In this document: piece by piece, positions 2,572 through 24,670 of the stretch
Position numbering within the stretch: the first letter of the stretch is position 1
How the letters are laid out: every line of letters begins with the position of its first letter
IMG/VR virus record: IMGVR_UViG_3300020473_001965
Span: 1 to 64,000 of that record
Length of the DNA stretch: 64,000 bases
Reading direction: 5' to 3' (one strand)
Position numbers and translations under genes: made by a program
Notes under the pieces: model-generated
Seen by the model: only the letters and a program-made list of their open reading frames with translations
The model's database searches: none
Told to the model about the DNA's origin: nothing

Positions 2572-2572
2572 T

Positions 2573-4051: not shown

Positions 4052-4066
4052 TCCTGCGGTTTTCGA

Positions 4067-4186: not shown

Positions 4187-4262
4187 TATTCACCTCCAAG
4201 GCGAAAATATACTCATAGGTAAATTATTGTATATAGCTAACGAATTTTTTATTCGCTTTTAT

Positions 4263-5720: not shown

Positions 5721-5726
5721 AAATCT

Positions 5727-5918
5727 CTACTTTTTCTCAGCTGAGATCGTGGAACGAACTAAATTCGCAGCTCTTGTTTTGAGATCACGCAATCCACGTC
5801 GTGCACGAACTCCTGCAGATTTATTTCCACGGGCGTTTTTGTGAACATCTAGTTCAAGACTTTCAACGAGGACCTTGATCTCTTCCCACTGGTTAAGAAT
5901 GTTATCAGTTTCTGACAT
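5727..5918 (-). CDS. Histone H1-like (Hc1 family) small basic protein
   Basis: GNKSAGVRARRGL motif. Confidence 0.75.
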   Translation of the reverse strand: MSETDNILNQWEEIKVLVESLELDVHKNARGNKSAGVRARRGLRDLKTRAANLVRSTISAEKK

Positions 5919-5980
5919 TTTTTTACTCCTTTAACGTCTAAGTGACATTATTATATATGCACACACAAAAGATTTTATCA

Positions 5981-6226
5981 TTAATTATTGACAATCAGCG
6001 TGCTGCCTTTATTGATCTCTCCATCTGCCACGGCTTTGCAAGCATTAGAAAGATATTTCATATCCTTGATATTTTCAAGCTCCAAAGATAGTAGATAGAC
6101 TAGCTGAACAATTTGTTTTTGCGAGACGCCAAAATTTAAAATCTCTTGTACTATTTCTCGACATCTAGCGCGATCTCTGATGTCCATCTCATCATCTGTT
6201 TCACCGTAAGACGTTAAATCACTCAT
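5981..6226 (-). CDS. Hypothetical protein
   Basis: ORF in operon context, start at MSDLT after GAGG. Confidence 0.65.
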   Translation of the reverse strand: MSDLTSYGETDDEMDIRDRARCREIVQEILNFGVSQKQIVQLVYLLSLELENIKDMKYLSNACKAVADGEINKGSTLIVNN

Positions 6227-6695
6227 TTCTATCCTCAAATACTTCTTCTCTTGTAAAAGATTCAATTTTAACTTTTGTTGATCCCAACATATGAAGAACC
6301 TTACCTGTAACAGTACCTTTGAATTCCTCTTTTGTTAAAATAATGGGCGGGGCCTCTAAATTAGTCTCATAGTAAAACTGAACTTCTTCCCAAACAGGGA
6401 GGTCACATTCATATGTTTCCAAAATCTTTGAAAGATTTGCAGGAAGTGATAGCTTTATATCATTTTTAGTCATGACTGACATCGACGATTCGCGCCCTAC
6501 CACAATCTCAGACTTACAAAGATCATGAATTTTATGAACAACGCCACAATTGTTACAATGGCAGAATTTTTCAATCACTTTGTCTTCATCATCAACAACA
6601 GAAAAAACAACAAACTTATGAAAAAGTGGGTCCTTCATTTTTCTGTATTGAGGCAAAATACAGTGACATTGAATTAAATGTTTAAGTCCTCTCAT
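6219..6695 (-). CDS. Hypothetical protein, possible Zn-binding
   Basis: CHC and CNNC motifs; overlaps neighbours. Confidence 0.65.
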   Translation of the reverse strand: MRGLKHLIQCHCILPQYRKMKDPLFHKFVVFSVVDDEDKVIEKFCHCNNCGVVHKIHDLCKSEIVVGRESSMSVMTKNDIKLSLPANLSKILETYECDLPVWEEVQFYYETNLEAPPIILTKEEFKGTVTGKVLHMLGSTKVKIESFTREEVFEDRNE

Positions 6696-7183
6696 AATAA
6701 TCTTCTCATTTTTCTATTTATGGCTCTTCTTTCTTTTCTATTTACTCTCTCTAAAAAAGTAATTCCATCTAGGTGGTCTATTTCATGCTGAACACAAATA
6801 GCTTCTAAGTCTTTGAAGACTCTTGATTCTCGTTCTCCGTTGATGCTTAGATAACTAATTTGAACTGTACTGTACCTTTGAACAGCAACTTCCACACCGG
6901 GAAAGCTTAGGCATCCTTCTTTTTCATAAGACTCTCCTCGGCCTTCTCTGATTACTGGATTAATAAAGCATAAGGGCTCTTCTTGATCTTCTGAGCAGTC
7001 CATCACAAAGATCCTATTCAAATATCCTGCCTGATTTGCCGCTAAACCTACTCCCTTTGATTCGTACATCAAGTCTAACATTTTATCAATTTGAGCAATC
7101 ACCTTGTCGTCAATTTTTTCAACTTCTTTGCAAGGCGATGATAAGGACGGATCTGGGTATTTGAGTATTTTTTCACTTTTCAT
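6692..7183 (-). CDS. def: Peptide deformylase
   Basis: GVGLAANQ, EGCLS and HEIDH motifs. Confidence 0.95.
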   Translation of the reverse strand: MKSEKILKYPDPSLSSPCKEVEKIDDKVIAQIDKMLDLMYESKGVGLAANQAGYLNRIFVMDCSEDQEEPLCFINPVIREGRGESYEKEGCLSFPGVEVAVQRYSTVQISYLSINGERESRVFKDLEAICVQHEIDHLDGITFLERVNRKERRAINRKMRRLL

Positions 7184-7665
7184 TTTGAATGTTTGTCCGC
7201 CACAGCCGACGAAGCCCAAGAATCAGGTTTAGTTCTTATAGGGAACCCTGTGCTTTTAGCATAACCGGTGAGTTGTTCAGCGTATTTACCTGTTGCGCCT
7301 TTATCTGGAGAAGTGCTAATGTCTAGGTGTAGTTCTAAATTAGCCTCTGGGCACGTTTCTGATATCATCAAGGTGGTATTTACTGTTTTTGTCACTTCTT
7401 CTAGCATTCTTGTAACAAGCAGCCTAAAAGGGCCCACAGGCACTCTGTCTCTTTTAAGAAAATACCTTCCACCTTGTTGATTTTCTGCACCATGAAGACA
7501 AACCGCAGTTACAAAAACGCATATGTCTTTTGTCATAAAACTATCAGTACCTATAAAAATTCGCCCCTTGTCTTTTGTGTGTGCCCTTAATTCTACTATC
7601 AGGTCATCGATATCGATTGTATTTCCTTTTGGGTCAAACCAAAAATTACTTTTTAACAGGCTCAT
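7180..7665 (-). CDS. YkuK (DUF458) RNase H-like protein
   Basis: IFIGTDS, LHLDI and C-terminal AVADKHSK. Confidence 0.8.
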   Translation of the reverse strand: MSLLKSNFWFDPKGNTIDIDDLIVELRAHTKDKGRIFIGTDSFMTKDICVFVTAVCLHGAENQQGGRYFLKRDRVPVGPFRLLVTRMLEEVTKTVNTTLMISETCPEANLELHLDISTSPDKGATGKYAEQLTGYAKSTGFPIRTKPDSWASSAVADKHSK

Positions 7666-9022
7666 TTATTAAAGCTCCAGATGTATTTTTAATTAGAAGT
7701 GCACTGTTATGACAAACTCTCATACAATTAATAAAGCTACCAGCCGGAATCTTTTTTACTCTATTGAAAAACTTTTCTAATCCCTCTATTATAATAGGGT
7801 TTTCTTTTTTATCGTGTGCAGCAGCAAAGTCTTTTATTGAAAACATTCCAAAATCTCTAGCTATAGGGATTGTTCTAAAAGCAGCATCAATATTGATTTT
7901 AGTCTTTCTAATTTCACTATCAGACGTGTTTTTTGAAGGTGTAAAATGAATGCTTCTCCCACTCAGAGCCTTCATCCTGTATTGCATTGTCCTGTCAAAC
8001 AACTCTAAAGAGAAAGGGTCTAAGTTTTTTCTTTTTGCTTCAGCGTTCTTTTTAACTCTGTTTAAATGGTGGTGAATCTGTGCTGTTTTTGTATTGTTGA
8101 TAAAGATAATCTTACTAGGCTTTATTTCAACTCGATCAACCAGTTTAATTTCACTATAATCAATAGATGATATGAGATTCCCTTTCAAGTATGATACCGG
8201 GTCAGTGTCACAAACAACAGACATGTCAACAAAAGAGTTGATCGATTTTTCATCCTTTAATAGTTTTACAGGAAATATATTTAAAGCCTTTCTTTGCATG
8301 TTTACAAACAGTGTCTGTAAAACTTCATCTGCGTAACCTTGTGACACAATAACCATGGGATCTGTATTTTTAGATGCAAATTCTAATATGTGGTGTATCT
8401 CAGCTACGCTTTCAATGACACCATCAATAATTATCACTTTTGCAAAAGAATGATCCCAACTGTTACTCTTAATAAAAAATTCATTAAACGTCTCAACGTC
8501 AAAAGAAAACGCGTTTTTTATTTCAATAGTAGGATTTTCTATCTTTGAATCTTCAACAAAGAATTTACCAGACAAGCCTGTGGATACGAAAGCCTCTTCT
8601 AGTGCATGGCGTGTTATTTCACACCCAGACGCCTGGCTTACAAATTTTATAACTTCTTTTTTTCTCGTAGGAGAAACTATCTTTTCAATCATTTCAAATG
8701 ATGGGCATTTAATATCATCATTTGATGACTTAAGTAAGTTAATTGTGTACCATAATCCAAAATCAGAAAAAAAGGGTGCTTTATAAAAAAGCTCCAGGCT
8801 TTGTTGCGTCACAAAATCTATAATGGGTCGTGAAAGATTTTTCTCATATGTGAGACATTGAAACTTGTCTGATATGTTTGAAAGATAAAATATTTTATCG
8901 TCCGCATTCGAAAACAATGCGTTCCCTGTTTGAAATTGATTCAGCCTGGACCAAATTTCATCAATAGACTTTCTATATTCATCTTCATACAAGTCATTAG
9001 ACAGCACGTTTACAAAGCTCAT
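7646..9022 (-). CDS. Highly divergent GroEL/Cpn60-like protein
   Basis: Apical-domain-like IIDGVIESVAEIHHILE..PMVIVSQG..EVLQTLFVN..DMSVV; no GDGTT motif. Confidence 0.65.
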   Translation of the reverse strand: MSFVNVLSNDLYEDEYRKSIDEIWSRLNQFQTGNALFSNADDKIFYLSNISDKFQCLTYEKNLSRPIIDFVTQQSLELFYKAPFFSDFGLWYTINLLKSSNDDIKCPSFEMIEKIVSPTRKKEVIKFVSQASGCEITRHALEEAFVSTGLSGKFFVEDSKIENPTIEIKNAFSFDVETFNEFFIKSNSWDHSFAKVIIIDGVIESVAEIHHILEFASKNTDPMVIVSQGYADEVLQTLFVNMQRKALNIFPVKLLKDEKSINSFVDMSVVCDTDPVSYLKGNLISSIDYSEIKLVDRVEIKPSKIIFINNTKTAQIHHHLNRVKKNAEAKRKNLDPFSLELFDRTMQYRMKALSGRSIHFTPSKNTSDSEIRKTKINIDAAFRTIPIARDFGMFSIKDFAAAHDKKENPIIIEGLEKFFNRVKKIPAGSFINCMRVCHNSALLIKNTSGALINEPVKK

Positions 9023-9399: not shown

Positions 9400-11331
9400 T
9401 CAAGAATCGCGCCAGAGGTTGTTGCTAGCATACGTTAGAATTTCTTCAGCTGACTCAGGTGTGTAACCGTATTCATCAATCATGGTCTGAACCATCTCAT
9501 TATACTTCTTCTGCTGATCATCATCCCTTGATTTGCTCTTTGTGACGACACGCGCAAGATCTTTAATAGAGGTCATGAGATATGATTCAATCGCTTCTTT
9601 TAGTGGCGCGTAACTTGTATAGTCGATTCGCTCTTTTCTTCTCATTTTAGCAAACATATACGCTGTAACGTCTGACCTAAAACCATCCCGAGCAGAACCT
9701 GTAATACCGATTGTCTCTTCTATTGCACGCATGAAGTTTTCATCAGGATCCATAGATTCTTTTGTAACTCGATTCTTCATGCTCTGCTTAGTTGTAAAAG
9801 CCTCAGCATTATCTAGATAAGTGTCAAATAGTGACTGTGCTTGCTCTTCGTAAGCAGTAACAAATGCTTTTGCAATTTCATTCTCAAGCATTTTTAAGTA
9901 CTCTTCTCTGATCACTTTTCTTAACAGTTCTAAGCAGTGTGCCCTGAATTCTGCATCGATTAACTGCTCGTTAACTTGTCTGATAAGTGAATTCATCACT
10001 GAGATGGGTGTGATCATTTCGTTTTCTGAATCACTCAAGGCATTGTCTACGGCTTTCATTATAAACCTTGTAGAAATACCATTCATTCCCTCGTCTCTTG
10101 ACTCATCTCTCAGATCTTTAATGTCTACCTTCTTGACCCTGCCCTTTTCAATTACGTCTTCGCCGTTATAGATCTTCATTTTCGTCATAGGATCGCACTT
10201 CTGGCTTGTGTGAAGCCTAGAAAGGACAGAGAACATTGAGGCAATTCTCAGTGTGTGAGGTGCAATGTGCGCATTAAAGTCAGATCTTGAAAGAATCTTT
10301 TCATAAATTTTAATTTCTTGATCAAGTTCTAAAACGTACGGAACGTTAATTTTTACTACGCGATCTAAGATAGCTTCGTTTGTATGTTCACTTTGAAATT
10401 TATTCCATTCAGCTTCGTTACAGTGAGCAACAATCACACCGTCGAAGTATATCATATCATGCTTCCCTGGAGATGGAACCCTCTTCTCCTGCGTCGCAGT
10501 GATTATTGTATGGAGAAACTCAATCTCATTTTTGAACACCTCAACTAGCTCTACAATCCCTCTGTTACCTACATTGAAAGCGCCATTAAGGGACAGTACT
10601 CGAGGATCATCTTCAGCATATTTGTCAAGCTTTGAAATGTCTTCTGACCCTATTAGAACAGAAACATCCTGACTGTTTGCATCCATGGGTGGGACTGAAG
10701 CTATTCCTCTTCTAGCCCTTTGAGAAAACGTTGTTTCTTTAACAACAAAATTTTCGTATTCGCGGCCGTACTCTTCAAACAGCAGGTGCCTGGCAACCGG
10801 TGATATGTCACCCTCTATTTTCACACCCAGCAATTCCTCAAACTGGCTTCGAAGCCCCCGGGGTATTAAGTGTAAAGGCTCACCCCTCTGAGGATCACCT
10901 TGTAAATAAAAGTATCTTTCACCATCTAATGCACGCTTAATATGTTCTGTAAGAGCCGACTTACCAGCACCAACTGGACCCATCAAGAGCAATACTTGTC
11001 GTGATTCCTCACCTCTTTTAGATGCAGAGTTTAGAAATCTCATAACCTTGGCAATAACTTTTTCCATCCCAAAAAATTCAGATTGAAAATAATCATATGT
11101 TTTCAATGATTCGCCACCAAATAGTTTGTGACATCTTTCATCATTCTCATTCATCGACTGGACGCCGTGCCCTTCTATTGCTTCTGTAAGACGCTTATGA
11201 GCTAATTTTGCGATAGACGGGTTTTTTCTTATAATCTCTAGATACTCAATAAAAGTACCTTCAAACTTATCATCAGTCTTCTTAGCTCTTTGCTCTTTGA
11301 TTATTTTTAAAAAATCTTTTGATGCAGCCAT
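9400..11331 (-). CDS. prkA: PrkA/YeaG AAA+ serine protein kinase
   Basis: EFFGME, Walker A GPVGAGKS, GNRGIVELVEVFK, NEAILDR, EGMNGISTRF. Confidence 0.93.
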   Translation of the reverse strand: MAASKDFLKIIKEQRAKKTDDKFEGTFIEYLEIIRKNPSIAKLAHKRLTEAIEGHGVQSMNENDERCHKLFGGESLKTYDYFQSEFFGMEKVIAKVMRFLNSASKRGEESRQVLLLMGPVGAGKSALTEHIKRALDGERYFYLQGDPQRGEPLHLIPRGLRSQFEELLGVKIEGDISPVARHLLFEEYGREYENFVVKETTFSQRARRGIASVPPMDANSQDVSVLIGSEDISKLDKYAEDDPRVLSLNGAFNVGNRGIVELVEVFKNEIEFLHTIITATQEKRVPSPGKHDMIYFDGVIVAHCNEAEWNKFQSEHTNEAILDRVVKINVPYVLELDQEIKIYEKILSRSDFNAHIAPHTLRIASMFSVLSRLHTSQKCDPMTKMKIYNGEDVIEKGRVKKVDIKDLRDESRDEGMNGISTRFIMKAVDNALSDSENEMITPISVMNSLIRQVNEQLIDAEFRAHCLELLRKVIREEYLKMLENEIAKAFVTAYEEQAQSLFDTYLDNAEAFTTKQSMKNRVTKESMDPDENFMRAIEETIGITGSARDGFRSDVTAYMFAKMRRKERIDYTSYAPLKEAIESYLMTSIKDLARVVTKSKSRDDDQQKKYNEMVQTMIDEYGYTPESAEEILTYASNNLWRDS

Positions 11332-11376: not shown

Positions 11377-12684
11377 TTAAATTTCCCAAGGTTCCTCTTC
11401 AATTATCGTATTTAACTTTACGACATCTTCCCAAAGCTCTGATATGCTCTTAACTACGTTTTCTGCATATGAAAGCTCTAGATCTCTTCCGTCGTGATCA
11501 TGATAAAGGACAAGAACGTTTCCTGCCTCTATTTCCGAAACACCGATCACCGGGATACTGTTTACTCCCGTATTTCTTATCATGTCTTCTCTAATTGGTT
11601 CCCATCCATCTTCATCAGAAATTTCATCGATAGTGTATGCGTTTTTCTTGGGGGAGTAACTAAACAAATTCAAGTCTTCAAAATCTTGACGATTCATTAA
11701 TGCTCTAATTGCAGCTACGTCATGGAATACTTCTCGAACAAAAAAGCATTCATCTATTCCTCTTTCTTTTTCTAATCTTTGAAAGAGGTGGAAGCCGACA
11801 TGATATGGGTTAATACCACCCACATGCGGTCTTACTACTTGATTGTGTGTTTTTAGAAAAGGTATGTGAATGTCTTGAGGTACTTCGAGTTCGTGCATAA
11901 TCTTATAATGCCAGAAACTAGCCCAACCTTCATTCAGTATTTTTGTTTTGATTTGAGGAATAAAATATAGAGATTCTGTTCGAACGATATCAATCAAATC
12001 TCTTTCCCAATCAGAGAGATGTGTACCATGTTCTACAATAAACCCTAGTAAATCGACGTCATAAGAAAGCGGGATTTTTTCTATGTCTACATTCTTGTAT
12101 TCACCCTTTTCATCGAATCTTATTTTTTCTGTTAATTCATTTTTGATTGTATCGTGAGGAATTCTTTCCTGACCGTCTCTGTACGTTTGAAATCTAATGG
12201 TGTGAGCAGCATCTAAAATCTTTTCAACCTTTTCGATACCGATGCTGGGATCTTCGATATAACCCTGTATTCTATTTCTAGCATTTCTAAACCTAGAAAT
12301 AACAGTTTCGGGTCGAGTATCTTTAAATTGAGGATTATTTTTAAAGAAATCACTATGACCCACACAGTGTGCCATAATCAACACCTGCATAAATAGTGGG
12401 TTTTCTCTCATCAAGTATGCTATTGATGGGTTGGAATTGATAATCAACTCGTACGGTAGGCCTTCGAGACCCATGTTATACATTTGATGGGTTCTTTCAA
12501 ACGATTTGCCGTAAGACCAGTGACCGTAATGAGACGGTAGACCATGATAAGACATGTGCCCAATCATTTCGTAGTAGTCACATATCTCATAATTGATGGG
12601 AAACCAGTCTAGATTATAATCCCTTGACATGTCAATAATACGACTATCCCAGTTTTCTAAGTCTGATATTTTCCAATCACTCAT
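11377..12684 (-). CDS. spoVR: SpoVR/YcgB family protein
   Basis: HWSYGK, YELIINSNP, AHCVGHSDFFKNN, TKILNEGWASFWH, NPYHVG. Confidence 0.93.
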   Translation of the reverse strand: MSDWKISDLENWDSRIIDMSRDYNLDWFPINYEICDYYEMIGHMSYHGLPSHYGHWSYGKSFERTHQMYNMGLEGLPYELIINSNPSIAYLMRENPLFMQVLIMAHCVGHSDFFKNNPQFKDTRPETVISRFRNARNRIQGYIEDPSIGIEKVEKILDAAHTIRFQTYRDGQERIPHDTIKNELTEKIRFDEKGEYKNVDIEKIPLSYDVDLLGFIVEHGTHLSDWERDLIDIVRTESLYFIPQIKTKILNEGWASFWHYKIMHELEVPQDIHIPFLKTHNQVVRPHVGGINPYHVGFHLFQRLEKERGIDECFFVREVFHDVAAIRALMNRQDFEDLNLFSYSPKKNAYTIDEISDEDGWEPIREDMIRNTGVNSIPVIGVSEIEAGNVLVLYHDHDGRDLELSYAENVVKSISELWEDVVKLNTIIEEEPWEI

Positions 12685-13855
12685 CTATCTTTCCTCCAAA
12701 TATTCTTGAAAAAGCCGGCCAGATGTCATCTTTTGAAGTGAGCATAATATTTTTAAACTTTTTGTCGACCATGTGCTCATATTCTTTAGACATAAGGGAC
12801 TGCTCAAACCGACTCCACTTTGGCTCTTCTTCATGCGGCAAGATTTCAATAAAACAATATAGCTGTGCCAGGTTTTTGATCTTGAGTGACTCATTAATAG
12901 CCCTAGGGTTGTCTTCAGGCCAATTATCACCATCTGAGCAGTGGAATGCGTAAATATTCCATGAATCAGGATGATAGCGCTTAGATATTATTTCATTTGC
13001 AAGCTTGGGCGCGGATGAAATGTAAGTACCTCCGGAGGTCATGACTTTAAAAAAGTCATCTTCATTTACTTCTTTTGCTTTAGTTGTATGAGCGAGAAAG
13101 ACAATTTCTGTATTTTCATACCGATGGTTGATAAACTGATATAATAGGAAAAAGAATGATCTTGCTATAAACTTTTTCTTTTGTGTCATCGAGCCTGACA
13201 CGTCCATCATGAAGAATATTACAGCATTTGAATTTTCACGGGGTGTAGGTTTAATATAGTGATACTTTAAATCATTTTGATGAAATGGAAATCTTTCCTC
13301 TTCTTCTGGGTCATAGTCACCTGTTCTCTGCGCTGCTTTTTTTCTTCTAATTTTGTTCTTAAGTGTTTCTTTCTTTGAAAGTCTTGGCCTAATCCCTTCT
13401 GATCGATAGCCCTTTCTCCTGAGCTTTTCTCCCATGATGTTCTTCATCTGCTTCTTTTCAAGCTCAGGAAGGTTCAGGTCGTCAAACAGGTAAGCCGCTA
13501 ATTCTTCGAGAGATATTTCTACTTCGTAGATTTCTTCGCCCTCTTCATTGCCTGCCTTGTTACCTGGCTTTTTTTCTTTGCCCTTCTTTTGAATGGATTG
13601 CCCACGAGTGATGTCTGCACCAGGTGCGCTACCTACTTTTCTATTTTTAGAATTTTCACCATATATGAATCTATACTCTTTGATACCTCTGACTGGTATC
13701 TTGATCTTCTTCTTGCCATCTTTTCCAATAATAGACTCATCTGAAACGATATCATGAATACCTTCCTTGATGGCTCTTTCTATCTTTTTCTTGTGTCTAG
13801 ATCTGTCACTAGCTGAACGATCTGAGTGTGTTTTATGATGTTTAAAAATGGACAT
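12677..13855 (-). CDS. yeaH: YeaH/YhbH (DUF444) VWA-containing protein
   Basis: DRSRH, MMDVSGSM MIDAS, SGGT, WNIYAFHCSDGDNW. Confidence 0.92.
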   Translation of the reverse strand: MSIFKHHKTHSDRSASDRSRHKKKIERAIKEGIHDIVSDESIIGKDGKKKIKIPVRGIKEYRFIYGENSKNRKVGSAPGADITRGQSIQKKGKEKKPGNKAGNEEGEEIYEVEISLEELAAYLFDDLNLPELEKKQMKNIMGEKLRRKGYRSEGIRPRLSKKETLKNKIRRKKAAQRTGDYDPEEEERFPFHQNDLKYHYIKPTPRENSNAVIFFMMDVSGSMTQKKKFIARSFFFLLYQFINHRYENTEIVFLAHTTKAKEVNEDDFFKVMTSGGTYISSAPKLANEIISKRYHPDSWNIYAFHCSDGDNWPEDNPRAINESLKIKNLAQLYCFIEILPHEEEPKWSRFEQSLMSKEYEHMVDKKFKNIMLTSKDDIWPAFSRIFGGKIDE

Positions 13856-13864
13856 AATAAAATT

Positions 13865-14452
13865 CTATTCCAATATTGAGTTTTGTATCAGCTCATGAAT
13901 ATAGGCTTCACTGTAACCCCTTAGTGTAGATTTTATCACCATATTCTTGTCAATAAACATAAATGTGGGCCATGACTCCACTGGTGGGCCCGAAATACCA
14001 TTTGGATCCAGCATTTCTCGATCACCACCCAGGACGAAATGGTCGTCCAATCCGTACGTGTCAGACCATAATTGTAAGTCTGCTAAATCTACGGGCTGAC
14101 CTGACAGATCATCAATTAAAATTGTGATAAATTCTAGGTCTTCTTCTGCATATTGGTCAGATATTGATTGTATAGATCCAGCAGTAACTCGACAATAACC
14201 GCACCACATTGTACTAAAGTCTAGAACAATAGGTTTTCCAATGTGATCATAGAGTTCAAAATCTTCTCCATGTTGGTCTGTTAGCTGCAAATTACACATG
14301 TGTTCTTCCTGGGTGTAACCGCAGTCGTCCCAAGTAACAAGGCTTTCAGGTTCAGATGGTGAAGAATCTTTTGAGTTGGATCCGCATGATTCGCCGCAGC
14401 CAACAAGAAAAATTGAAAAGAAAAGTGCTTTTAAGCTGAGATTTGATAACAT
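13865..14452 (-). CDS. TlpA-like thioredoxin-fold lipoprotein
   Basis: LVGC lipobox; WCGYC; cis-Pro WPT. Confidence 0.85.
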   Translation of the reverse strand: MLSNLSLKALFFSIFLVGCGESCGSNSKDSSPSEPESLVTWDDCGYTQEEHMCNLQLTDQHGEDFELYDHIGKPIVLDFSTMWCGYCRVTAGSIQSISDQYAEEDLEFITILIDDLSGQPVDLADLQLWSDTYGLDDHFVLGGDREMLDPNGISGPPVESWPTFMFIDKNMVIKSTLRGYSEAYIHELIQNSILE

Positions 14453-14486
14453 AATACATCCCTCTTATAATATATAGGATGTTTTC

Positions 14487-14831
14487 CTAGACCTTGAACT
14501 TTCTCCAAGCAAATCTTTTTCTTTTCGCCAGGTAGTTTACATCTACATCATGGTCGTAAGCCTCTTGTTCAAACCTAATTCTATAGTAAGCTGTTTCCTT
14601 GTTTCTATATTTTATTAAACCGTGCAGCCAGTCCCACACATAGAGGACATAAAAACCCACGACTAAAAGTTCACTGTACTGTTTGATGTGTATCGACTCA
14701 TGGTTTATAGTTCTGTCATTCCCTTCATCTCTAATAAAGATAAAGGGCCAAAGAGTGATTGCATATGCATTAATAACCCAGCTCAAAGCCTTAGGCACCC
14801 AACTATTTTTTACTATAATGGGTATTTTCAT
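14487..14831 (-). CDS. HExxH-containing protein (DUF4157-like)
   Basis: AITLWPFI..HESIHIKQ..FEQEAY. Confidence 0.7.
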   Translation of the reverse strand: MKIPIIVKNSWVPKALSWVINAYAITLWPFIFIRDEGNDRTINHESIHIKQYSELLVVGFYVLYVWDWLHGLIKYRNKETAYYRIRFEQEAYDHDVDVNYLAKRKRFAWRKFKV

Positions 14832-15823
14832 GCTTGATCTCCTGAAATTTTTAAATGGGCCCACTCAATTGCAGGTTTTAAATGAGCGTGACATTTTGAG
14901 AGCATAGTGTCATAATCGACCCAATCCCAACCATGATGTTCATACTCTCCAGTCTCTGGGTTCTTTTTAATTTTCGGTGTTTGTGAAGTTTCAGCTATCC
15001 AACATCTTGTCTTTGGTGTATCAAAAGAATCTTCACCCCACCTAAAATCCAGAACGGTAATGTTTGCCTCCTCTTCCACTTCGCGAAGAGCTGTTTCAAA
15101 ATGGCTACCATGATCGTCTGTATCCATCCTGCCTTTCGGGATATCATACTTTCCATAAATTTTAAGACCTAAAAATAGGCCTTTTTCATTGATAACTATG
15201 ATCCCTGCACCTTGTGGGCTTTCAAAAAGGTATTGAAGTGACTCATTTACCCCCTCTTTAGCAATTTTTAAAATCATGTCTAAGTGACGTTGATCAATTC
15301 CGGGTGGCGTACCGCCATGAAAGTCCAAAAGTATATTGATTGCATTTTTATATTTATTCTTCTGTTTTTCAGAAGGTGAGGAAGAAATATTGTGAAGCAT
15401 ATCTGCTAGCTTCACTCTTAGTGCTGTACCAGAAAGGCTTGTCACGTACTGCGAATAGTCAACATTTTTATCATGTGTTAAAGAACGAACGACATCAATT
15501 ACTTCATTTTTGACCTGTTCGTTTTCGATACTTTGACCAATCCTATCTAAGACTTCTTCTTCAGACTTAAATACACCCCCTTTTTCATAATCTTCTAAAG
15601 CATCATGTAGTAGTGCAGCTAGCTGGCCTATTTTATCTGACGGATAGAATCTCCTCATTATGTTTCTAACAGCCTTTGGGTGCTCATAATAAGGTTCGCC
15701 AGATCTTCTACGTTGATCTCTGTGTACCTCTTCACCTGCTCGATAGGTATCTGCATAGGTATCAGAAGTAATAACCTCAGAAATGTATTCTCTAATTAAT
15801 CTTGACATGTTTTTGCTGACCAC
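14828..15823 (-). CDS. HD-domain (RelA/SpoT/Mesh1-type) hydrolase fused to a Nudix hydrolase
   Basis: HRDQRRRSGEPYYEHP, AALLHDALED, VKLADMLHN; Nudix box PKG..TALREVEEEAN. Confidence 0.88.
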   Translation of the reverse strand: MVSKNMSRLIREYISEVITSDTYADTYRAGEEVHRDQRRRSGEPYYEHPKAVRNIMRRFYPSDKIGQLAALLHDALEDYEKGGVFKSEEEVLDRIGQSIENEQVKNEVIDVVRSLTHDKNVDYSQYVTSLSGTALRVKLADMLHNISSSPSEKQKNKYKNAINILLDFHGGTPPGIDQRHLDMILKIAKEGVNESLQYLFESPQGAGIIVINEKGLFLGLKIYGKYDIPKGRMDTDDHGSHFETALREVEEEANITVLDFRWGEDSFDTPKTRCWIAETSQTPKIKKNPETGEYEHHGWDWVDYDTMLSKCHAHLKPAIEWAHLKISGDQA

Positions 15824-15858
15824 CAGGAATAAGTATTATCTGAAGAGGATTTTTTAAT

Positions 15859-17514
15859 ATGGCAACAAGAACAAGAAACTTTGGTGCAGGTGTTGTAAAA
15901 ATTAACGAAGGGCTAATAATTTCGGGTTCTGATCCACAAGTATACGTCAGTGGAAACATCAACATAGACTCGCTCACAGAACCTCGCATTCAATTTCAAA
16001 TAGGCGGTGAAGACAGAGCCAAGATTCTTGTCAATACGTCGAACAACCTGGTTTTCCACAATCAATTTGTCAATAAACACATTGTTTTTAAGGCGAATGA
16101 TCAAGGTGTCACCCGAGAGGGTTTTCGTATCGATGGGGCAGTACCTGAAGTTGTTGTCAATCAGGGTTCAGAATCAATGATTGATTTTCGTGTAGAATCA
16201 AACAACAATACACACATGCTTTTCGTGGATGGGGGAAATGAAAAAGTAGGTATTGGAACAGCTTCTCCCTCCACCACATTTCATGCATATGCTAATGTAT
16301 CCAATGCGTACGTAGCCACAATTGACAATGACCAAGCCTCAGCAGGACATGTTCTAAAGCTTCTAACAGACGGAAACGGATCTGGAACACGAATACTAGA
16401 AATGGAAGACGGCGACGGCGATGTTATTTTCCGGGCCCGCGCCGATGGTCGGTTTGGCTTTGGGCCCGACGGTGTCAGCAGTATGGGCGCCGGCACTTTC
16501 GTAGTGGGTATTGATAATTCTTCTCATACAGCTGACATAGCGATATCGAAAAGACTTCAGCATCTCGGAGACTCAAACACGTATCTAGACTTCCCTTCAG
16601 CCGATACCTTCAACCTTGTAGCAGGCGGCAATTCTTTCCTTAAATACGATAGTGGAAATATTCTACTAAACAATGCAAATGCAGATGTTGACACAAAGAT
16701 TATGGCTGATAATGGCGCTGTAGTGCTACATGTTGATGCTGGAACGAACAGGGTTGGTGTTGGTACGACTGGGCCCGATCGGGCGCTAGATGTGCTAGAT
16801 TCATCAAACCCGCAGATGAGATTGTCACACACAGACGGATCAAATTATGTTGATTTTCAAGCTAGTGCAGCTGGTGATCTAATTCTGACAGGATCGGCTT
16901 CAAACGCAACATACATCTTTACATCAGCTGGAAATGCAAAGATCAACGTACAATCAAATGCAGGGGACGGCGATGCCGAAGTAGGATTTAGTGTCGATGC
17001 AGGAGCAAATATTGCGTGGTCGTTAGGTGTTGACGATGGCGACTCAGATAAGTTTAAAATAGGTGGATCAACAATTGGAGCAAATACTCGCCTTACAATT
17101 GACTCTAACGGTCATGTAGGAGTAGGCACTACTAATCCAGCTAGCACGCTCTCAGTGGCAGGATCAATAGCAGTAAACGTTACATACTTTGGTCAAGCGA
17201 ATGATCCAGGAACAACGTACACAATGAATGCTACAGATTGTGTTGTTATCGCCAATACACGACCAACAGCACAGGGTGGTATCGATAGCGCAATAACGAT
17301 AACACTTCCAGATGCATCTGACTTCCCTGGACGCATTGTCACAATCAAGGATGGCGCAGGCTATAGTGATGTAAATGCTATCAATATTAACGCAGCATCA
17401 GGCGACAATCTAGACGGAAACCCATCAACTACTACTACGAATCTACCTACTCCAGCAAGCTTTAAGACACTAGTATCTGACGGTGTCAATAGCTGGTATG
17501 AGATAGGTAGCTAG
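15859..17514 (+). CDS. Tail-fibre-like virion structural protein
   Basis: Repeated (K/R/H)VG(I/V)GT beta units, Gly/Ser/Asn-rich, C-terminal ITLPDA..GRIVTIKD..SDGVNSW module. Confidence 0.7.
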   Translation: MATRTRNFGAGVVKINEGLIISGSDPQVYVSGNINIDSLTEPRIQFQIGGEDRAKILVNTSNNLVFHNQFVNKHIVFKANDQGVTREGFRIDGAVPEVVVNQGSESMIDFRVESNNNTHMLFVDGGNEKVGIGTASPSTTFHAYANVSNAYVATIDNDQASAGHVLKLLTDGNGSGTRILEMEDGDGDVIFRARADGRFGFGPDGVSSMGAGTFVVGIDNSSHTADIAISKRLQHLGDSNTYLDFPSADTFNLVAGGNSFLKYDSGNILLNNANADVDTKIMADNGAVVLHVDAGTNRVGVGTTGPDRALDVLDSSNPQMRLSHTDGSNYVDFQASAAGDLILTGSASNATYIFTSAGNAKINVQSNAGDGDAEVGFSVDAGANIAWSLGVDDGDSDKFKIGGSTIGANTRLTIDSNGHVGVGTTNPASTLSVAGSIAVNVTYFGQANDPGTTYTMNATDCVVIANTRPTAQGGIDSAITITLPDASDFPGRIVTIKDGAGYSDVNAININAASGDNLDGNPSTTTTNLPTPASFKTLVSDGVNSWYEIGS

Positions 17515-17895: not shown

Positions 17896-17971
17896 TGGAG
17901 CCACTGATAGGGTTCGAACCTACGACCTGCTGATTACAAATCAGCTGCTCTACCAACTGAGCTACAGTGGC
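17896..17971 (-). tRNA. tRNA-Thr(UGU)
   Basis: Complete cloverleaf, anticodon loop TTTGTAA, encoded CCA. Confidence 0.95.
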
Positions 17972-17976: not shown

Positions 17977-18438
17977 TTAAATTATTTTCAATACTTCCCA
18001 TGATGATTCGCGAGTGGGAGTTATTACTTCAAATCCGTCACCCGGGGCCAGTCCCAACATGGCTTTTCCGAAAGGTGAGACGTAACTTATCTCACCCTGC
18101 GAAGGGTCTGATTCATGAATACCTACAATAGTAATTGTTTTAATTTCATCTGTATCTAAATTTTGAACCTCTGCAGACCTACCAAAAGATACAACATCAC
18201 TAGACATGTCGGGTGCTGTAATAGAAGAAGTATCGATAATTTCTTTAAGATCATCTATAGACTTTTCAACTTTTGATCTTTCATTAATAGCAGTAGCATA
18301 TTTTGAGTCTTCTCTAAAGTCACCATCACCCATCGCATCAGCGACTTCTTTTTGAGCTGCCTTTAATTTCTTATTTAAGTTTTCAAACTTTTGTATAAGC
18401 TTTTTATAGCCACCACTTGTTATAAGGTGTCTATTCAT
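17977..18438 (-). CDS. greA: Transcription elongation factor GreA/GreB
   Basis: GDFREDSKY and ISYVSPFGKAMLG motifs. Confidence 0.88.
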   Translation of the reverse strand: MNRHLITSGGYKKLIQKFENLNKKLKAAQKEVADAMGDGDFREDSKYATAINERSKVEKSIDDLKEIIDTSSITAPDMSSDVVSFGRSAEVQNLDTDEIKTITIVGIHESDPSQGEISYVSPFGKAMLGLAPGDGFEVITPTRESSWEVLKII

Positions 18439-18796
18439 TTGTCTGTTCCCCCTCTTTTGCCTTGTAATAGAAAATAGTAAATCTACCATCCGAACATACT
18501 AGAGGTAGATTATCGTCAAATAGTTGATCAGCAAACATTGTAGGTATTACTAGAAATTCTGAATCGTTCCAAAAACTATCTGTTTCGCTGTAATCTTTTT
18601 TGCAAGAAACCAAAATACCTCCTGTTCCTACTTCCATATTGGGGGAAGAACAAAAGTCTTTGTCCATGTTTACTAGAAGGGCATCTAAGCACATACTAGA
18701 CGTGTGTATAAAATCTTTGCCTGCATATTCTATAATGTTTTGCTTAATGCAACCAGTCGCGAAAACTAACGATAGTGAAAATAAAATTGATCTCAT
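18431..18796 (-). CDS. Hypothetical lipoprotein
   Basis: ATGC lipobox. Confidence 0.6.
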   Translation of the reverse strand: MRSILFSLSLVFATGCIKQNIIEYAGKDFIHTSSMCLDALLVNMDKDFCSSPNMEVGTGGILVSCKKDYSETDSFWNDSEFLVIPTMFADQLFDDNLPLVCSDGRFTIFYYKAKEGEQTNE

Positions 18797-20096: not shown

Positions 20097-20340
20097 ACCT
20101 TTTAGGTTTTTCAAAGCTGCATTTTTCTAAAAGGGCAATTCGCTGTCCACGCTCAATGGTCATGATTTGAACGCACGGGCCCCATTTTTCATCTATAAAA
20201 AAACCAGTAATTTTACCGGACAGTACAGTGCCGCCATAAGCTTCGAACCATATCTCATCAAGGAGCTTAAAACCCTCCATTTCTTCGATAGCGTCTTTCT
20301 TCACTACCTCTTTAACTGTTTTCTTCTTTTTACGTGCCAT
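20074..20340 (-). CDS. Basic hypothetical protein
   Basis: ORF coupled to the dnaJ stop. Confidence 0.6.
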
Positions 20341-21361
20341 GATCTTTTAACTTTTTGATTAATTCAGTACATGAATCCGATAAATTAGTAGGTACTGCAA
20401 TCCCCACCTTGACATATAGGTTTCCCGGGGCAGTTTTCATTCCCGGCATTCCCTTTCCACGAATCTCAAATACTTTTTCACCTTTAGTTCCCTTTTTTAT
20501 CTTTATAGTTTCTTTACCCCACAAAGAATCAACGTTGATCTCTCCCCCAAGTACAAATGTTGAAAATGGTGCAGTTGTCTTTGAGTAAAGATCCTTTCCT
20601 TCTCTTTCAAATGATTTGTGCTGAGCTATTCTTATAACAACGTATGCATCCCCCGGCACTCGAGAAAGATTAACATGGTCTCCCTTCCCTGATATTCTGA
20701 GCCTATTTCCTTCCATCACACCAGGCGGAATATTGACATTAACGATATCAGTTTTTCTTTTGAACGCAGAGCCATTACATGATGAACATGGGTTAGTGAT
20801 TACCTGACCTAATCCATGACATGCCGGGCAAGTCTGATTAAAAACCATGAAGCCTTGTTGTACTCCAACACGACCAGATCCGTTACACTGTCGACAATCT
20901 TCCGGTTTTGAACCTGCTGGATGTCCTCTACCGTCACAGGTATCACATGCGATTGATCGCTGTATTTTTACCTTTCTCATCCCGCCAAAAGCTGCTTCTT
21001 CTAGAAGAATGGTTTTCTCTGCTAAAACATCGCCATTTCTAAAATCTTGACGGGTTTCTTGTGCACGGCGCCTCGCATCTCCAAACCCTCTGCCAAAAAA
21101 ATCACCAAAATGAGAAAAAATATCTTCAAAACCGTGAAATTCATGAGCACTGCCGCCACCACTGTCGTAGTGAGCCCTCTTTTTAGGATCAGACAGTACT
21201 GAATAGGCTTCTGATACTTCTTTAAATTTTGTTTCTGCCGTACTATCCCCGGGATTTTTGTCAGGATGGTACTTTAGAGCGAGTTTCCTATAAGCTTTCT
21301 TGATAGTGGTTTGATCAGCATCTTTTCCAACACCTAATATGTCATATAAATCATTTTTCAT
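20330..21361 (-). CDS. dnaJ: DnaJ chaperone
   Basis: J-domain HPD, G/F linker, four CxxCxGxG-type repeats. Confidence 0.95.
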
Positions 21362-22133: not shown

Positions 22134-23627
22134 CTATTGAGGAATAATTTCTACATCTTGGGAAAACTTTTTTCTCTGGTAAATCTGAGCTTGATTTTTC
22201 ATCCAAAAATTTGCCTCTTCCCCATTTTGAAATTCTTTTTCAAAAACTTCTTCCCATTCATCAGTCGCTTTATTGTATTCTTCTATGACAACGTAAGTAA
22301 TTCCGGAACCTATGTGAACATGGGAAGACACACGAAACCCTTCTTGCTCCATCACATCCATGGGATCCATGTTCGGCGTGTGATACGACCTCCCGGGCTC
22401 TTCTTTAATGATGCCCTCGTCCAACCAAGCGTCCCTCTTTTTCATGATATCAGTAAGTTCCCTATTCCACGGCCCATCAGTTCCAGACATTGTGCACTTC
22501 GTCAAGACCTCTTCGGCTGTGAACTCTTCGACAACCTCTGGCTGAAACATGTCATAGTAGACGTCTTTCGGTATACCGTCGGGTTTTGTTATCTTTGTCT
22601 GGTCATCTAAAACCATATCACCCATCTCAACCCACGCATGGACAATCGGTTTGGGTGGCTTCTCCCACTTGTCTGTTACCTTTCCGTGAACGACCTTAAA
22701 CTTGCTCAAATCATTAAGATCGGGATGTTTTACTCCGTCGCCTTCAGGGTCATCTGGCCTTGTATAGTGTTGTTCAAACCACATCTCAGCTTTTTGAACT
22801 GTAAAGGGGAAACATTGACCTATAGCAATTACATTTTCTCGAAGAAGTGCTCTTACCATTTCTCGAGTTGCATTTTCTTTAAGATGTTTTTTCAATAGAG
22901 TTAAAAGCTCTTCATCTTTCACTGCATATGCTCTCGGCCCGCCCGCGGCAGCTTCAATAGCCTCGATAGCTTTGCGCTGCTCATCAGCTGTAAGCATTTT
23001 AATTACATCTTCAGGGTGTTGTGTTGCTCTTAGCCCCCCGAGATTAAATGCATTTTGACGCCTTTCCCATGCAGCCATTTCTTCATCAGAAAGCCATGAA
23101 GGTCGAGTTGCCTTTCTTGTTCTGCCTCGGCCAAAACTTGAATCGTCAATTTGATCCCAAAGCTCATCTCTGTCCATGCTCTTGCCCAAGAATTCAATTT
23201 CCTTTCCCGCTTCGTTCCACACTTCCTCAGGGATTAGAACTTCAGAGCCACTGTCATACCTATGAATGCCACCTGACTTTTCTATAACCCAGTGCGGTAC
23301 CTTATAAGCATACACATTTCCCGATCTTCCATGATTCATCGCGATATCAACTGGGTTAGGAGTTAAGAAAACACCAGACTTAACTGGGTTGTCAAGCCAA
23401 TGTCTTTCCCAAACATCAGTCCCAGGAACGGTTACCATATCGCCCGTTCTTTCTCCAGTATCCGGATCTACGGCGTCACGATCCCACATTCGAAGGTAAG
23501 ACATTTTAGTTTGAGGTCTCGCGGGCCGCTTATTAATATGGTATAAGACTCTTTTAGTTTTATCGTTACGACCGGTTCGTTCACTAAGAACTTGTCTAAT
23601 GTACTCGTGAAGGAGATTCACTTGCAA
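22134..23627 (-). CDS. Multidomain putative virion-internal protein (ART-like plus Cys-His-Asp domain)
   Basis: LLHEYIRQVLSE motif; LYH..GVFLT..EVLIP; internal REMVRALLRE; GQCF..HAWVE..D. Confidence 0.6.
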   Translation of the reverse strand: MQVNLLHEYIRQVLSERTGRNDKTKRVLYHINKRPARPQTKMSYLRMWDRDAVDPDTGERTGDMVTVPGTDVWERHWLDNPVKSGVFLTPNPVDIAMNHGRSGNVYAYKVPHWVIEKSGGIHRYDSGSEVLIPEEVWNEAGKEIEFLGKSMDRDELWDQIDDSSFGRGRTRKATRPSWLSDEEMAAWERRQNAFNLGGLRATQHPEDVIKMLTADEQRKAIEAIEAAAGGPRAYAVKDEELLTLLKKHLKENATREMVRALLRENVIAIGQCFPFTVQKAEMWFEQHYTRPDDPEGDGVKHPDLNDLSKFKVVHGKVTDKWEKPPKPIVHAWVEMGDMVLDDQTKITKPDGIPKDVYYDMFQPEVVEEFTAEEVLTKCTMSGTDGPWNRELTDIMKKRDAWLDEGIIKEEPGRSYHTPNMDPMDVMEQEGFRVSSHVHIGSGITYVVIEEYNKATDEWEEVFEKEFQNGEEANFWMKNQAQIYQRKKFSQDVEIIPQ

Positions 23628-24187
23628 TCTCCTGCCTTAACTAAGTCTTCAACACCATCAGCATCCCAGATACAACCAGATGCCACATCCCACCCGTAAT
23701 ACCACATAACATCTCTTTTCTTATGTAAGTAAGGGCAAATCTCTATACCTGAGTATGCTTCAGCCACTTTCGGCCAATCAATCAGGTCTTCTTCTCTATC
23801 GTCAGGAAATACGGGATGAGGAACACTATATTTTTTAACAAACTTGTCAAAGTAATACTCGTCTGTTATGTGAAGTATATTGTATCCTTTATCTTTAAGT
23901 ATGACGTTATAAGTCCCGTCATATTTGCTGTATCCGTCTGACAGTCCTGTTTCACAAAAAGCCTTCCAGTCCATTGCACTTCCGTCCTGGCACTCGTACC
24001 ATAAGCCGTTTGGTTTTCTATCTACCTTTTGAGTAAATCCTGATATTTGCGGTTTGTCATCTACCCGAGTGCCCGGGCGACTATGATGTATTCTAAGCTT
24101 GTCTTTAGCGTAGATTGGAAATCCTTCCAGGAGAATGCTTCTTACAAATTCACGGATTAGAGCCTTTTGTTTCTTCTGAATTGTCAC
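23618..24187 (-). CDS. Phage protein with LIREFVRSILLE motif and KPNGLW..WDVASGCIWD domain
   Basis: Motifs read directly. Confidence 0.65.
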   Translation of the reverse strand: MTIQKKQKALIREFVRSILLEGFPIYAKDKLRIHHSRPGTRVDDKPQISGFTQKVDRKPNGLWYECQDGSAMDWKAFCETGLSDGYSKYDGTYNVILKDKGYNILHITDEYYFDKFVKKYSVPHPVFPDDREEDLIDWPKVAEAYSGIEICPYLHKKRDVMWYYGWDVASGCIWDADGVEDLVKAGDCK

Positions 24188-24542
24188 TTCTTTTCCGTCT
24201 CCTGTCTAGTTTTTTCTTCAATCTTTTAAGATTTTTAATATCGTCTTCTTGAATTTCAAGGGTAATAGGCTTTTCCCACTCAATAAGACGGTTATTAATA
24301 ATATCTATTTTCCTTTCTGTAATATAATTCTTCCAGGCGATCCATAAAAGAAAAATAATAGCATAAAAGTCATAGATGTTAGCATCTAGTCTCGGACCGA
24401 TTCTGGCGTTGACGAAGACAAAAGGAACCAGCCAAGCCATCGCCCAGGCGACTATTCCTACCTTGATAGCAGATGCTACAGGTTTCGCTAGGGCTCTCAA
24501 AGCCCCGGCGACGGATTGGAGACGAGAAGACCAGGGACGCAT
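24150..24542 (-). CDS. Membrane protein
   Basis: Two TM segments and a basic tail. Confidence 0.6.
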   Translation of the reverse strand: MRPWSSRLQSVAGALRALAKPVASAIKVGIVAWAMAWLVPFVFVNARIGPRLDANIYDFYAIIFLLWIAWKNYITERKIDIINNRLIEWEKPITLEIQEDDIKNLKRLKKKLDRRRKRSDNSEETKGSNP

Positions 24543-24606
24543 GTCTATAAATATAAATGTTTCTAGGATTTTATCTGTAAGCTAGAAAATTAATTTATGG
24601 GTGGAT

Positions 24607-24641
24607 AAAAGGAAAAGGATCCCCAAAACAACAGGGATCCT
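24607..24641 (-). terminator. Intrinsic terminator
   Basis: GGATCCC stem plus U-runs on the minus strand. Confidence 0.55.
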
Positions 24642-24670
24642 CCAGGAGTCTTCTAGATATACTCTAGAGT

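Follow-up and report, generated by a model that had tools for sequence, protein, structure and literature searches.

The HD-Nudix gene and its cassette

The gene examined here lies on the minus strand of a 64-kb stretch of DNA (the window), which comprises the first 64 kb of the 235,672-bp IMG/VR virus record IMGVR_UViG_3300020473_001965 (completeness estimate 87%). The encoded protein consists of a short N-terminal leader, a Rel/SpoT-type HD domain, a linker, and a Nudix domain, and its gene is followed by a cassette encoding YeaH-, SpoVR-, and PrkA-like proteins (Table 1). This two-enzyme architecture, proposed in a first-pass annotation made from the DNA letters, was borne out by Pfam, where both HD_4 and NUDIX matched above their cut-offs. 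In the AlphaFold (AF2) model, both domains were confident, with a mean predicted local distance difference test score (pLDDT) of 85.7; residues 1-18 scored below 50.

An uninterrupted open reading frame (ORF) spans positions 14828-15823 and encodes 331 amino acids if counted from GTG. The frame that had been annotated is therefore real and open, but its GTG start at 15823 is likely 5 codons too far upstream. In all 24 aligned homologues, the first residue is a Met that aligns with M6, a column without variation, and the cluster representative, at 99% identity, is 326 amino acids long. Because of these two observations, the true start is most likely the ATG at 15808, which gives a protein of 326 residues. 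Residue numbers below follow the 331-residue (GTG-start) numbering.

The fusion is not an assembly artefact, because a contig from another study's run spans positions 13800-16400 with 3 substitutions and 0 indels, a contig from a third run passes the domain junction unchanged, and about 14 fused clusters (39-99% identity) come from independent sources.

Table 1. Positions in the window of the fusion gene, its parts, and the genes of its cassette. The slash marks the position directly after the Glu of an L/I-x-E motif.
Feature	Position	Strand	Remarks
Promoter-like element ATACTTA	15830..15836	(-)	28 nt upstream of the ATG; instance of the oriented ATA[ATC]TTA signal
HD-Nudix fusion coding sequence	14828..15808	(-)	326 amino acids; homologues start at invariant M6; listed ORF is 5 codons longer, to GTG 15823
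N-terminal leader MSRLIREYISE/VIT	15767..15808	(-)	Residues 6-19; portable motif; candidate I-x-E protease site after E16
Rel/SpoT-type HD pyrophosphohydrolase domain	15254..15766	(-)	Residues 20-190; family models, catalytic set, MESH1 fold match
Inter-domain linker ...NESLQYLFE/SP	15215..15253	(-)	Residues 191-203; L-x-E-[SG]-P junction; pLDDT about 59
Nudix domain	14840..15214	(-)	Residues 204-328; variant Nudix box; family-invariant E295-H296...W
114-residue ORF with HExxH motif (NHESIH) and hydrophobic stretches	14487..14831	(-)	Downstream of the fusion gene; 74% identical in L006
Thioredoxin/AhpC-like lipoprotein	13865..14452	(-)	Cassette insertion in this phage and L006
YeaH-like protein (DUF444)	12677..13855	(-)	E = 1.4e-112; synteny
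SpoVR/YcgB-like protein	11377..12684	(-)	E = 1.3e-112; synteny
PrkA/YeaG-like AAA serine kinase	9400..11331	(-)	E = 9e-136; synteny; last cassette gene

The HD half resembles Rel/SpoT-type hydrolase domains

The HD half was recognized by Pfam HD_4 (residues 31-155; 29.4 bits against a cut-off of 27.2, and 28.9 bits when searched on DNA) and by the NCBIfam spoT_relA model (residues 27-164, E = 4e-13). Its best solved relatives were the hydrolase domains of long RelA/SpoT homologues (RSH), with T. thermophilus Rel matched at E = 3.5e-11 by the single sequence and at 7e-22 by the family profile. These long Rel/SpoT domains outscored both (p)ppApp hydrolase and MESH1, and the predicted fold matched MESH1 (Foldseek, template modelling score 0.7 by target). 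Residues R39/R40, H48, H73, D74, E77, D78, D141, and N145 were invariant across 25 homologues and aligned to T. thermophilus Rel. We take their metal-binding and catalytic roles to be those of RelSeq and Mesh1 (H...HD...D, the ED dyad, R of RxSGEPY, and N of LHN). With this full residue set and with solved (p)ppGpp hydrolase domains as best match, the SpoT-type assignment of the first-pass annotation was upheld: the identity of the HD half as a catalytically intact Rel/SpoT-type hydrolase domain is well supported by sequence, and alarmones would be its substrates.

The fusion protein has no synthetase domain but falls outside the class of small alarmone hydrolases (SAHs), which are single-domain, synthetase-less enzymes, because it is fused to Nudix; the split HD orthologues of 192-194 amino acids do belong to this class. 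Nor does the gene have the setting of an antitoxin to a small alarmone synthetase that acts as a toxin (toxSAS). Its neighbours are other genes, and no match to the RelA_SpoT synthetase domain (PF04607) was found anywhere in the 235.7-kb record. This record contains a single HD_4 and a single NUDIX domain, with no second copy of either; the HD domain is an orphan hydrolase in a synthetase-less genome record.

The Nudix half resembles Ap4A hydrolases

Pfam NUDIX matched residues 204-317 at 35.3 bits (cut-off 21.1). When the Nudix family profile was compared with PDB, the best matches were hydrolases of diadenosine tetraphosphate (Ap4A), namely 1KT9 from C. elegans (2.2e-13), human NUDT2 3U53 (4.7e-10), and 1XSA (9e-9), and these ranked above every other Nudix class. 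The EH...W segment is common to the family and the Ap4A hydrolases, and the catalytic R-E-x2-E-E is invariant in the family. Relative to the reference Nudix box (G-x5-E-x7-R-E-U-x-E-E-x-G-U), the protein has the variant G231-x5-D237-x9-R247-E248-V-E-E251-E252-A-N; the split Nudix homologues keep the canonical G-x5-E. Ap4A hydrolases usually have a tyrosine 16-18 residues past the Nudix box, and none was seen at this distance in the present domain. With Foldseek, the Nudix half matched MutT, RppH, and Ap4A hydrolases at probability 1.0. The Nudix domain noted in the first pass was thus confirmed, with asymmetrical Ap4A hydrolases as its best match. Its identity as a member of the NUDT2 (asymmetrical Ap4A hydrolase) lineage is well supported at the sequence level, and its substrate is predicted by homology. 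Ap4A is a stress signal broken down by Nudix enzymes (PMC7705103).

Origin of the fusion and conservation of the cassette

In three related loci (L015, L016, and L017), HD (192-194 amino acids) and Nudix (139-151 amino acids) are encoded by separate adjacent genes, while they are fused in L006 (62% identical) and in L007-L009 (39% identical). Because HD and Nudix are separate adjoining genes in related phages, these comparisons indicate that the protein arose by fusion of two adjacent genes. In all compared loci (L006-L009 and L015-L017), the HD and Nudix genes are followed by DUF444/YeaH, SpoVR, and PrkA, which in the window are full length and highly similar to their own Pfam families. The small HExxH ORF and the thioredoxin-like lipoprotein are inserted into the cassette in the window and in L006. 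The cassette has been kept across phages whose HD-Nudix proteins are just 39-62% identical. The sole bacterial locus compared (L019, on a 547-kb Rhodospirillales contig) has the order prkA-yeaH-spoVR, and no HD or Nudix match was found in the 14-kb stretch fetched from it. Given this conservation and the differing bacterial order, the cassette of HD, Nudix, YeaH, SpoVR, and PrkA therefore appears to be phage-specific, and its synteny would tie the two hydrolases functionally to each other and to the stress-kinase module.

The ATG of the 114-residue HExxH ORF overlaps the TGA of the fusion gene (ATGA), and the same 4-nt overlap is present in L006, which suggests translational coupling of the two genes. 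This ORF matched no Pfam family. Near the cassette, a GreA/GreB-type transcript-cleavage factor and a full DnaJ are encoded (window positions 17977-18489 and 20330-21361), both of which L006 likewise encodes. At the secondary channel of RNA polymerase, GreA is a competitor of DksA, and a GreA-like factor close by would be in keeping with interference with stringent control.

Source genome and distribution

The record contains a T4-superfamily head module, with the major capsid protein (phrog_138, E = 1.5e-72), portal, and large terminase. The prohead protease (genome positions 207284-207895) matched Pfam Peptidase_S77, the T4 gp21 family, at 95 bits (cut-off 27) and phrog_207 at 2.7e-51. A scaffold-like protein is also encoded, which starts MSNSLYTEAIAE/A and compares with T4 gp22 (MLKEQLIAE/A). 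Among cultured phages, the nearest capsid proteins are those of Microcystis phage Mel-JY01 and Flavobacterium phage immuto, at just 35-46% identity. At least 20 marine (plankton) metagenome runs, dated 2014-2025 and drawn from several studies, contain near-identical DNA. By these comparisons, the source is a widespread marine T4-superfamily jumbo phage.

The Myxococcota host considered in the first-pass annotation was unsupported, as the phage occurs in marine plankton metagenomes and the PrkA relatives lie on contigs of other assignments. The closest PrkA sits on a 23.7-kb contig binned as a Legionellales metagenome-assembled genome, and this contig carries a phage-type cassette (Nudix-YeaH-SpoVR-PrkA). 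The scan, which was pattern-based, gave just one more PrkA relative, 52% identical and located on the 547-kb Rhodospirillales contig.

A portable N-terminal leader

The RLIREYISE motif (residues 8-16) is conserved in nearly all HD homologues. Such conservation could mean that the leader is no more than the first helix (alpha-1) of the SpoT-type HD domain, with a chance resemblance to other N-termini. In agreement with this, the alignment to the E. coli SpoT model (PRK11092) begins at residue 5 and that to the A. baumannii SpoT structure at profile position 5-6, and the AF2 model has a single continuous helix across residues 3-33. However, for most solved Rel domains the alignment starts only at profile position 16-19, past the leader, and the leader lies in the part of the model with pLDDT below 50. 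The motif also opens stand-alone Nudix homologues, whose fold is unrelated. Larger homologues have it both at the N-terminus and between domains, and in P0098 the N-terminal copy is 148 residues away from the HD domain, whereas several HD homologues (e.g., P0038, P0102, and P0105) have no leader at all. Of 75 motif hits among 240 retrieved proteins, 60 begin no later than residue 20, and the others lie at domain borders. On L013, a 67.6-kb marine viral contig, eight consecutive unrelated genes (positions 84-8579) begin with M-x-LLREYIRxLLxE; the last of them encodes a stand-alone HD alarmone-type hydrolase, and in another a GNAT-like fold starts after the leader. Because the motif occurs on stand-alone Nudix proteins, between domains, and throughout this array, and because the Rel alignments begin after it, we regard the leader, 11-14 residues long, as a portable module outside the HD fold. 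The helix alpha-1 explanation was weighed seriously and rejected on this evidence; it is close to refuted, and we consider it very improbable.

In the fused homologues, a second full copy of the leader lies in the HD-Nudix linker, and the L-x-E-[SG]-P junction is retained in all of them. The corresponding segment of the present protein (EGVNESLQYLFE, residues 190-201) had been described as a Glu linker. It is better explained, from these alignments and from the separate genes found elsewhere, as the shortened and decayed relic of the Nudix gene's own leader. Of note, four metagenomic homologues of 500-970 amino acids (P0114, P0116, P0122, and P0128) combine HD with other regions, including a HExxH-containing C-terminal stretch, and look like polyproteins in that leader copies separate their parts.

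The leader is not confined to HD and Nudix proteins. The core pattern hydrophobic-[RK]-x-hydrophobic-hydrophobic-x-E occurs 50 times in the genome, 18 times within the first 25 residues of a protein; as these positions make up 10.8% of all residues, the pattern is enriched 4.6-fold there (binomial P = 2e-6). A strict profile of a related leader, MKITKxQLRxIIKEE, gave 17 genome sites with a clear score gap, and the fusion protein is not among them. The MKITK-type and LREYIxE-type leaders are linked by the shared core pattern and by hybrid leaders, such as that of P0104. With the HD-family leader profile, the top scores at other genome sites were 8.2, 7.9, and 7.4, compared to 2.9-6.1 for shuffled sequences, a slight margin. 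About 25 or more genes carry the leader, with some copies internal or near C-termini, and two leader-bearing ORFs lie within the head module, between the protease and scaffold genes. Codon identity in the leader was 74% at positions 1 and 2 and 49% at position 3; since position 3 is much less conserved, selection acts on the leader peptide.

Those leader proteins that have a recognizable fold are enzymes (HD, Nudix, and GNAT-like), and most of the others are ORFans. The leader-bearing ORFs had no significant Pfam or PHROG family, with Peptidase_M32 (E = 0.0038, below cut-off) and phrog_5035 (E = 0.0017, unknown function) as the best matches; the exception is a 1049-residue ORF that matched phrog_13937 (unknown function) at 1.8e-27. 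ORFans with the leader are clustered on the minus strand of the window at 22134-28266 (ORFs 22134, 23618, 25545, 26345, 27050, and 27604), and small MKITK-type genes, some with internal second copies, run through genome positions 73-81 kb (L002:9000-17000). Neither cluster matched a Pfam or PHROG family. Neither these leader strings nor such a leader in marine phages were found in the literature searched. Sequence searches for a portable leader of this kind are an inexpensive way to pick out a whole class of phage proteins that are co-regulated or co-targeted.

The leader as a candidate capsid-targeting signal

The first-pass annotation had interpreted the leader as a capsid-packaging tag. Part of this idea stands, as the leader is portable, resembles the T4 capsid-targeting sequence, and occurs in a phage that encodes a gp21-family protease; the position of the gene, far from the head module, weighs against it. 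In the T4 internal proteins IPII and IPIII, the first 10 residues form the capsid-targeting sequence and are enough for packaging, with cleavage by gp21 after L/I-x-E (PMC9026906). Both proteins start MKTYQEFIAE/A and the fusion protein MSRLIREYISE/V, so that EFIAE and EYISE are compared at P5-P1. As in T4, the leader (M6-E16) is N-terminal, ends in I-S-E, is attached to unrelated proteins, and is accompanied in the record by a Peptidase_S77 protease and a scaffold. Arrays of leader genes, such as that in L013, recall the internal-protein loci of T-even phages. Because of the T4 parallels, the gp21-family protease, and these arrays, a role like that of the capsid-targeting sequence is the best available analogy for the leader, and the case for it is circumstantial.

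If the leader were a true capsid-targeting propeptide, the fusion protein would be made late, drawn into the prohead core, cut after E16 by the gp21-family protease, and injected with the DNA. A possible second cut after E201 would separate HD from Nudix, and alarmone erasure would then precede phage gene expression. Packaging, cleavage after Glu, and action at injection are all proposed by analogy with T4, and we regard this course of events as doubtful. Besides the T4 parallels, it agrees with the presence of the leader on unrelated folds, the two leader-marked ORFs in the head module, the protein-level selection on the leader, its unpacked state in the model, the junction motif kept in every fused homologue, and a promoter-like element shared with structural operons. 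However, L/I-x-E is a weakly specific motif that 92 of 322 genes contain in their first 20 residues, the strict MKITK-type model fails to score the fusion protein, and the number of leader genes, with their internal and near-C-terminal copies, is high. The gene is ~190 kb away from the head module, within what appears to be an operon (tightly spaced and co-oriented) with a lipoprotein and cytoplasmic regulators. A co-fold of the gp21-like protease with residues 6-45 gave a score of 0.00 ("no answer") and weighs neither way.

Polyvalent injected proteins carry at least 2 conflict-related domains per polypeptide and are encoded next to, or fused with, MuF or portal (PMC5512222). The fusion protein has two enzyme domains, but its gene lies beside PrkA-module genes and not beside the portal and head genes; the larger homologues of 3-4 domains, with leader copies between the domains, resemble the polyvalent class more. 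The distance from the head module and the company of PrkA, YeaH, SpoVR, and a lipoprotein would suit just as well an enzyme that is produced and acts within the infected cell. Packaging of this particular protein into virions, judged by analogy, is plausible but less likely than not.

The ATA[ATC]TTA signal, of which the element upstream of the gene is an instance, occurs 43 times in sense and 12 times in antisense orientation in 80-nt upstream regions and 97 times genome-wide on both strands. It often follows GYGTR and precedes the scaffold and other large structural-region genes (examples are at 15830-15836 and in the 9373 and 24554 regions), yet it is short and also precedes many other genes, and so is not limited to structural ones and points to no particular time of expression. 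A second upstream element, TAGT[GT]TA, precedes other genes; each element probably represents a promoter class of its own. The window showed no enrichment of the T4 late-promoter box TATAAATA (3 found, 2.06 expected).

The analogy may be extended to the entire leader family, from MKITKxQLRxIIKEE to LREYIxE, as a capsid-targeting and cleavage signal used across widespread marine T4-superfamily phages on two dozen or more proteins per genome, an extension that we advance only tentatively and consider less likely than not. Its members would be loaded into the prohead and released by the gp21-type protease, and multi-domain precursors would be cut at their inter-domain leader copies. If true, these phages would inject a whole set of enzymes, among them a (p)ppGpp/Ap4A eraser ready for use, into starved bacteria of the ocean, and injected effectors could be read straight from the genomes of uncultured phages.

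Proposed role of the fusion protein

Our favoured reading, held with moderate confidence and based on homology and gene context, is that the protein is a two-headed nucleotide-signal hydrolase with which a marine T4-superfamily jumbo phage erases host stress nucleotides in the infected cell. The metal-dependent HD half would take the 3'-pyrophosphate off (p)ppGpp-type nucleotides, perhaps also off (p)ppApp or 3'-pyrophosphorylated tRNA, and the Nudix half would cleave dinucleoside polyphosphates of the Ap4A type or a related substrate with a 5'-polyphosphate. Erasure of these starvation signals may keep a nutrient-starved marine host productive, and it may also blunt alarmone- or toxSAS-based abortive defences. 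Acting jointly with the PrkA module and the GreA-like factor close by, the protein would override starvation control.

Several points weigh against this reading. The identities of the two halves are assigned from sequence and fold. In the fused subgroup the Nudix box is atypical, with D237 in place of the first E, a spacer of 9 instead of 7, and N254 in place of G. The Nudix fold is also similar to those of the RNA-decapping enzymes RppH and Dcp2 (Foldseek), and the sequence of a Nudix enzyme does not reveal its substrate specificity. Little is understood of what the PrkA-YeaH-SpoVR module does, which makes the cassette link one of context and not of mechanism. None of the runs listed as containing the gene was an RNA-seq run. 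Finally, SAH-type HD enzymes are promiscuous; MESH1 is reported to hydrolyze NADPH (PMC9765508).

Some of these points would also suit a pair of RNA-end or cofactor enzymes that is not mainly an alarmone eraser. The HD half would then act on the 3'-pyrophosphate of tRNA CCA ends, repairing the damage done by CapRel- or FaRel2-type toxins, or on NADPH, and the Nudix half on RNA 5' ends, by decapping or de-pyrophosphorylation (RppH-like, or with Np4A or NAD caps as substrates). tRNA is pyrophosphorylated by toxSAS enzymes, and SAH enzymes reportedly reverse this modification. In line with such a pair, RppH and Dcp2 stand next to Ap4A hydrolases in the Foldseek ranking, Np4N caps or RNA ends are substrates of both RppH and NUDT2 (PMC7705103), and T4 NudE is annotated for FAD, ApnA, ADP-ribose, and NADH. 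At the profile level, however, the Nudix half matched Ap4A hydrolases at 2.2e-13 and RppH-type RNA pyrophosphohydrolases and Dcp2 at 1e-3 to 1e-5, the HD half scored highest against the long Rel/SpoT hydrolase domains, and a cassette with a starvation-response kinase suits signal nucleotides better. An RNA-end or cofactor function therefore appears improbable to us, and erasure of signal nucleotides remains the role that we prefer.

Comparison with known systems

The enzyme classes and the idea of a phage alarmone hydrolase are already known. Stand-alone phage SAHs neutralize all tested toxSAS toxins (PMC7229694), and an "HD-alarmone PDEase" was noted in jumbo phages (PMC7824862). The SAHs of Salmonella phages PVP-SE1 (PbcSpo subfamily) and SSU5 (PaSpo subfamily; PMC7229694) share with the present protein a synthetase-less Rel/SpoT-type HD domain and expected alarmone degradation. 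In contrast to them, the HD domain here is fused to Nudix, is preceded by a portable leader, and heads a PrkA cassette. When 50,697 phage records were searched with tblastn (E <= 1e-5), just 8 records matched, and PVP-SE1 and SSU5 were not among these 8, so that sequence relatedness is low. Relative to the literature searched, three features appear to be new: the fusion or adjacency of HD and Nudix, its conserved place in front of the YeaH-SpoVR-PrkA cassette of widespread marine phages, and the portable leader.

Compared with the long RSH hydrolase domains, which are the best sequence matches and whose metal and catalytic residues are conserved (N-terminal domain of T. thermophilus Rel, 6S2T/7OHG; M. 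tuberculosis Rel, 5XNX), the HD half is of SAH size and has no synthetase, TGS, or ACT domain. Because these domains are absent, allosteric control by ribosome or synthetase state would be absent as well. Metazoan MESH1 (5VXA) is the best fold match to this half. The Nudix half shares its best profile matches, the EH...W segment, and R-E-x2-E-E with NUDT2-type Ap4A hydrolases (1KT9 and 3U53), but it has the atypical box (G-x5-D-x9-RE...), is fused to HD, and has a predicted activity. T4 NudE is a precedent for a phage Nudix enzyme. With the T4 capsid-targeting sequence, the leader has in common a length of ~10 residues ending in I-x-E, its presence on unrelated proteins of a Peptidase_S77 phage, and the close P5-P1 match. 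The leader family is nevertheless longer and more varied, also occurs between domains, is known from sequence, and decorates enzymes instead of small basic proteins.

It is a long-standing proposal that marine phages reset the starvation (stringent) state of nutrient-limited hosts, and the classic candidate is cyanophage MazG, long proposed to degrade host (p)ppGpp. The same purpose is proposed here for a different fold: no MazG was found in the genome record, and a SpoT-type hydrolase domain is present instead. Cyanophage MazG was later reported to prefer dGTP and dCTP over (p)ppGpp (summarized in PMC12846349). In the HD-Nudix family, a genuine SpoT-type hydrolase domain is joined, by fusion or as a neighbour, to an Ap4A-hydrolase-like enzyme and to the PrkA-YeaH-SpoVR module, and because the phage occurs in at least 20 marine metagenome runs, the starvation-reset idea becomes directly testable with a defined gene set. 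These enzymes could also disarm alarmone-based abortive defences, as other phage SAHs do.

The cassette has a bacterial counterpart in the prkA-yeaH-spoVR (yeaG-yeaH-ycgB) stress operon. The phage encodes all three proteins at full length, but in the order YeaH-SpoVR-PrkA, with HD and Nudix in front. PrkA and SpoVR genes were annotated in jumbo phage RsoM2USA (PMC8504454), and spoVR was reported as a marine viral auxiliary gene (PMC8940887).

Other features of the window

A 50-bp divergent region separates the start of the fusion gene from a plus-strand ORF of 551 residues (15859-17514). Its product is Gly/Ser/Asn-rich, matched no family, is 46% identical in L006, and may be a fibre-like structural protein. 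Predicted lipoproteins, with a signal peptide ending in a Cys lipobox, are encoded at 1570-2586, 3088-4011, 4263-5183, and 13865-14452. The last of these is the thioredoxin/AhpC-like protein of the cassette. Some of the lipoproteins contain a G-C-S-D-Y motif, and further copies are encoded elsewhere in the genome (69409, 110583, and 111451).

Two auxiliary genes are unusual for a phage, one encoding a DDAH/amidinotransferase-like protein (758-1543; PF19420, 8.5e-15) and the other a KaiC/RecA-like ATPase (37596-38345; PF06745, 1.9e-12). A transfer-messenger RNA (tag peptide ANNNYHYEQRLAA) and five tRNAs (Thr, Leu, Met, Lys, and Arg) are located at 5354-5720, 17896-17971, and 35835-36890. The region at 28-47 kb has a higher GC content overall and mostly short ORFs, which suggests a foreign origin. 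Within it, a GC-rich island at ~40000-46000 (55-60% GC, compared to ~38% nearby) encodes a MoxR-like AAA_5 ATPase (43017-44045) and a DUF2201 metallopeptidase/VWA protein (41562-42905).

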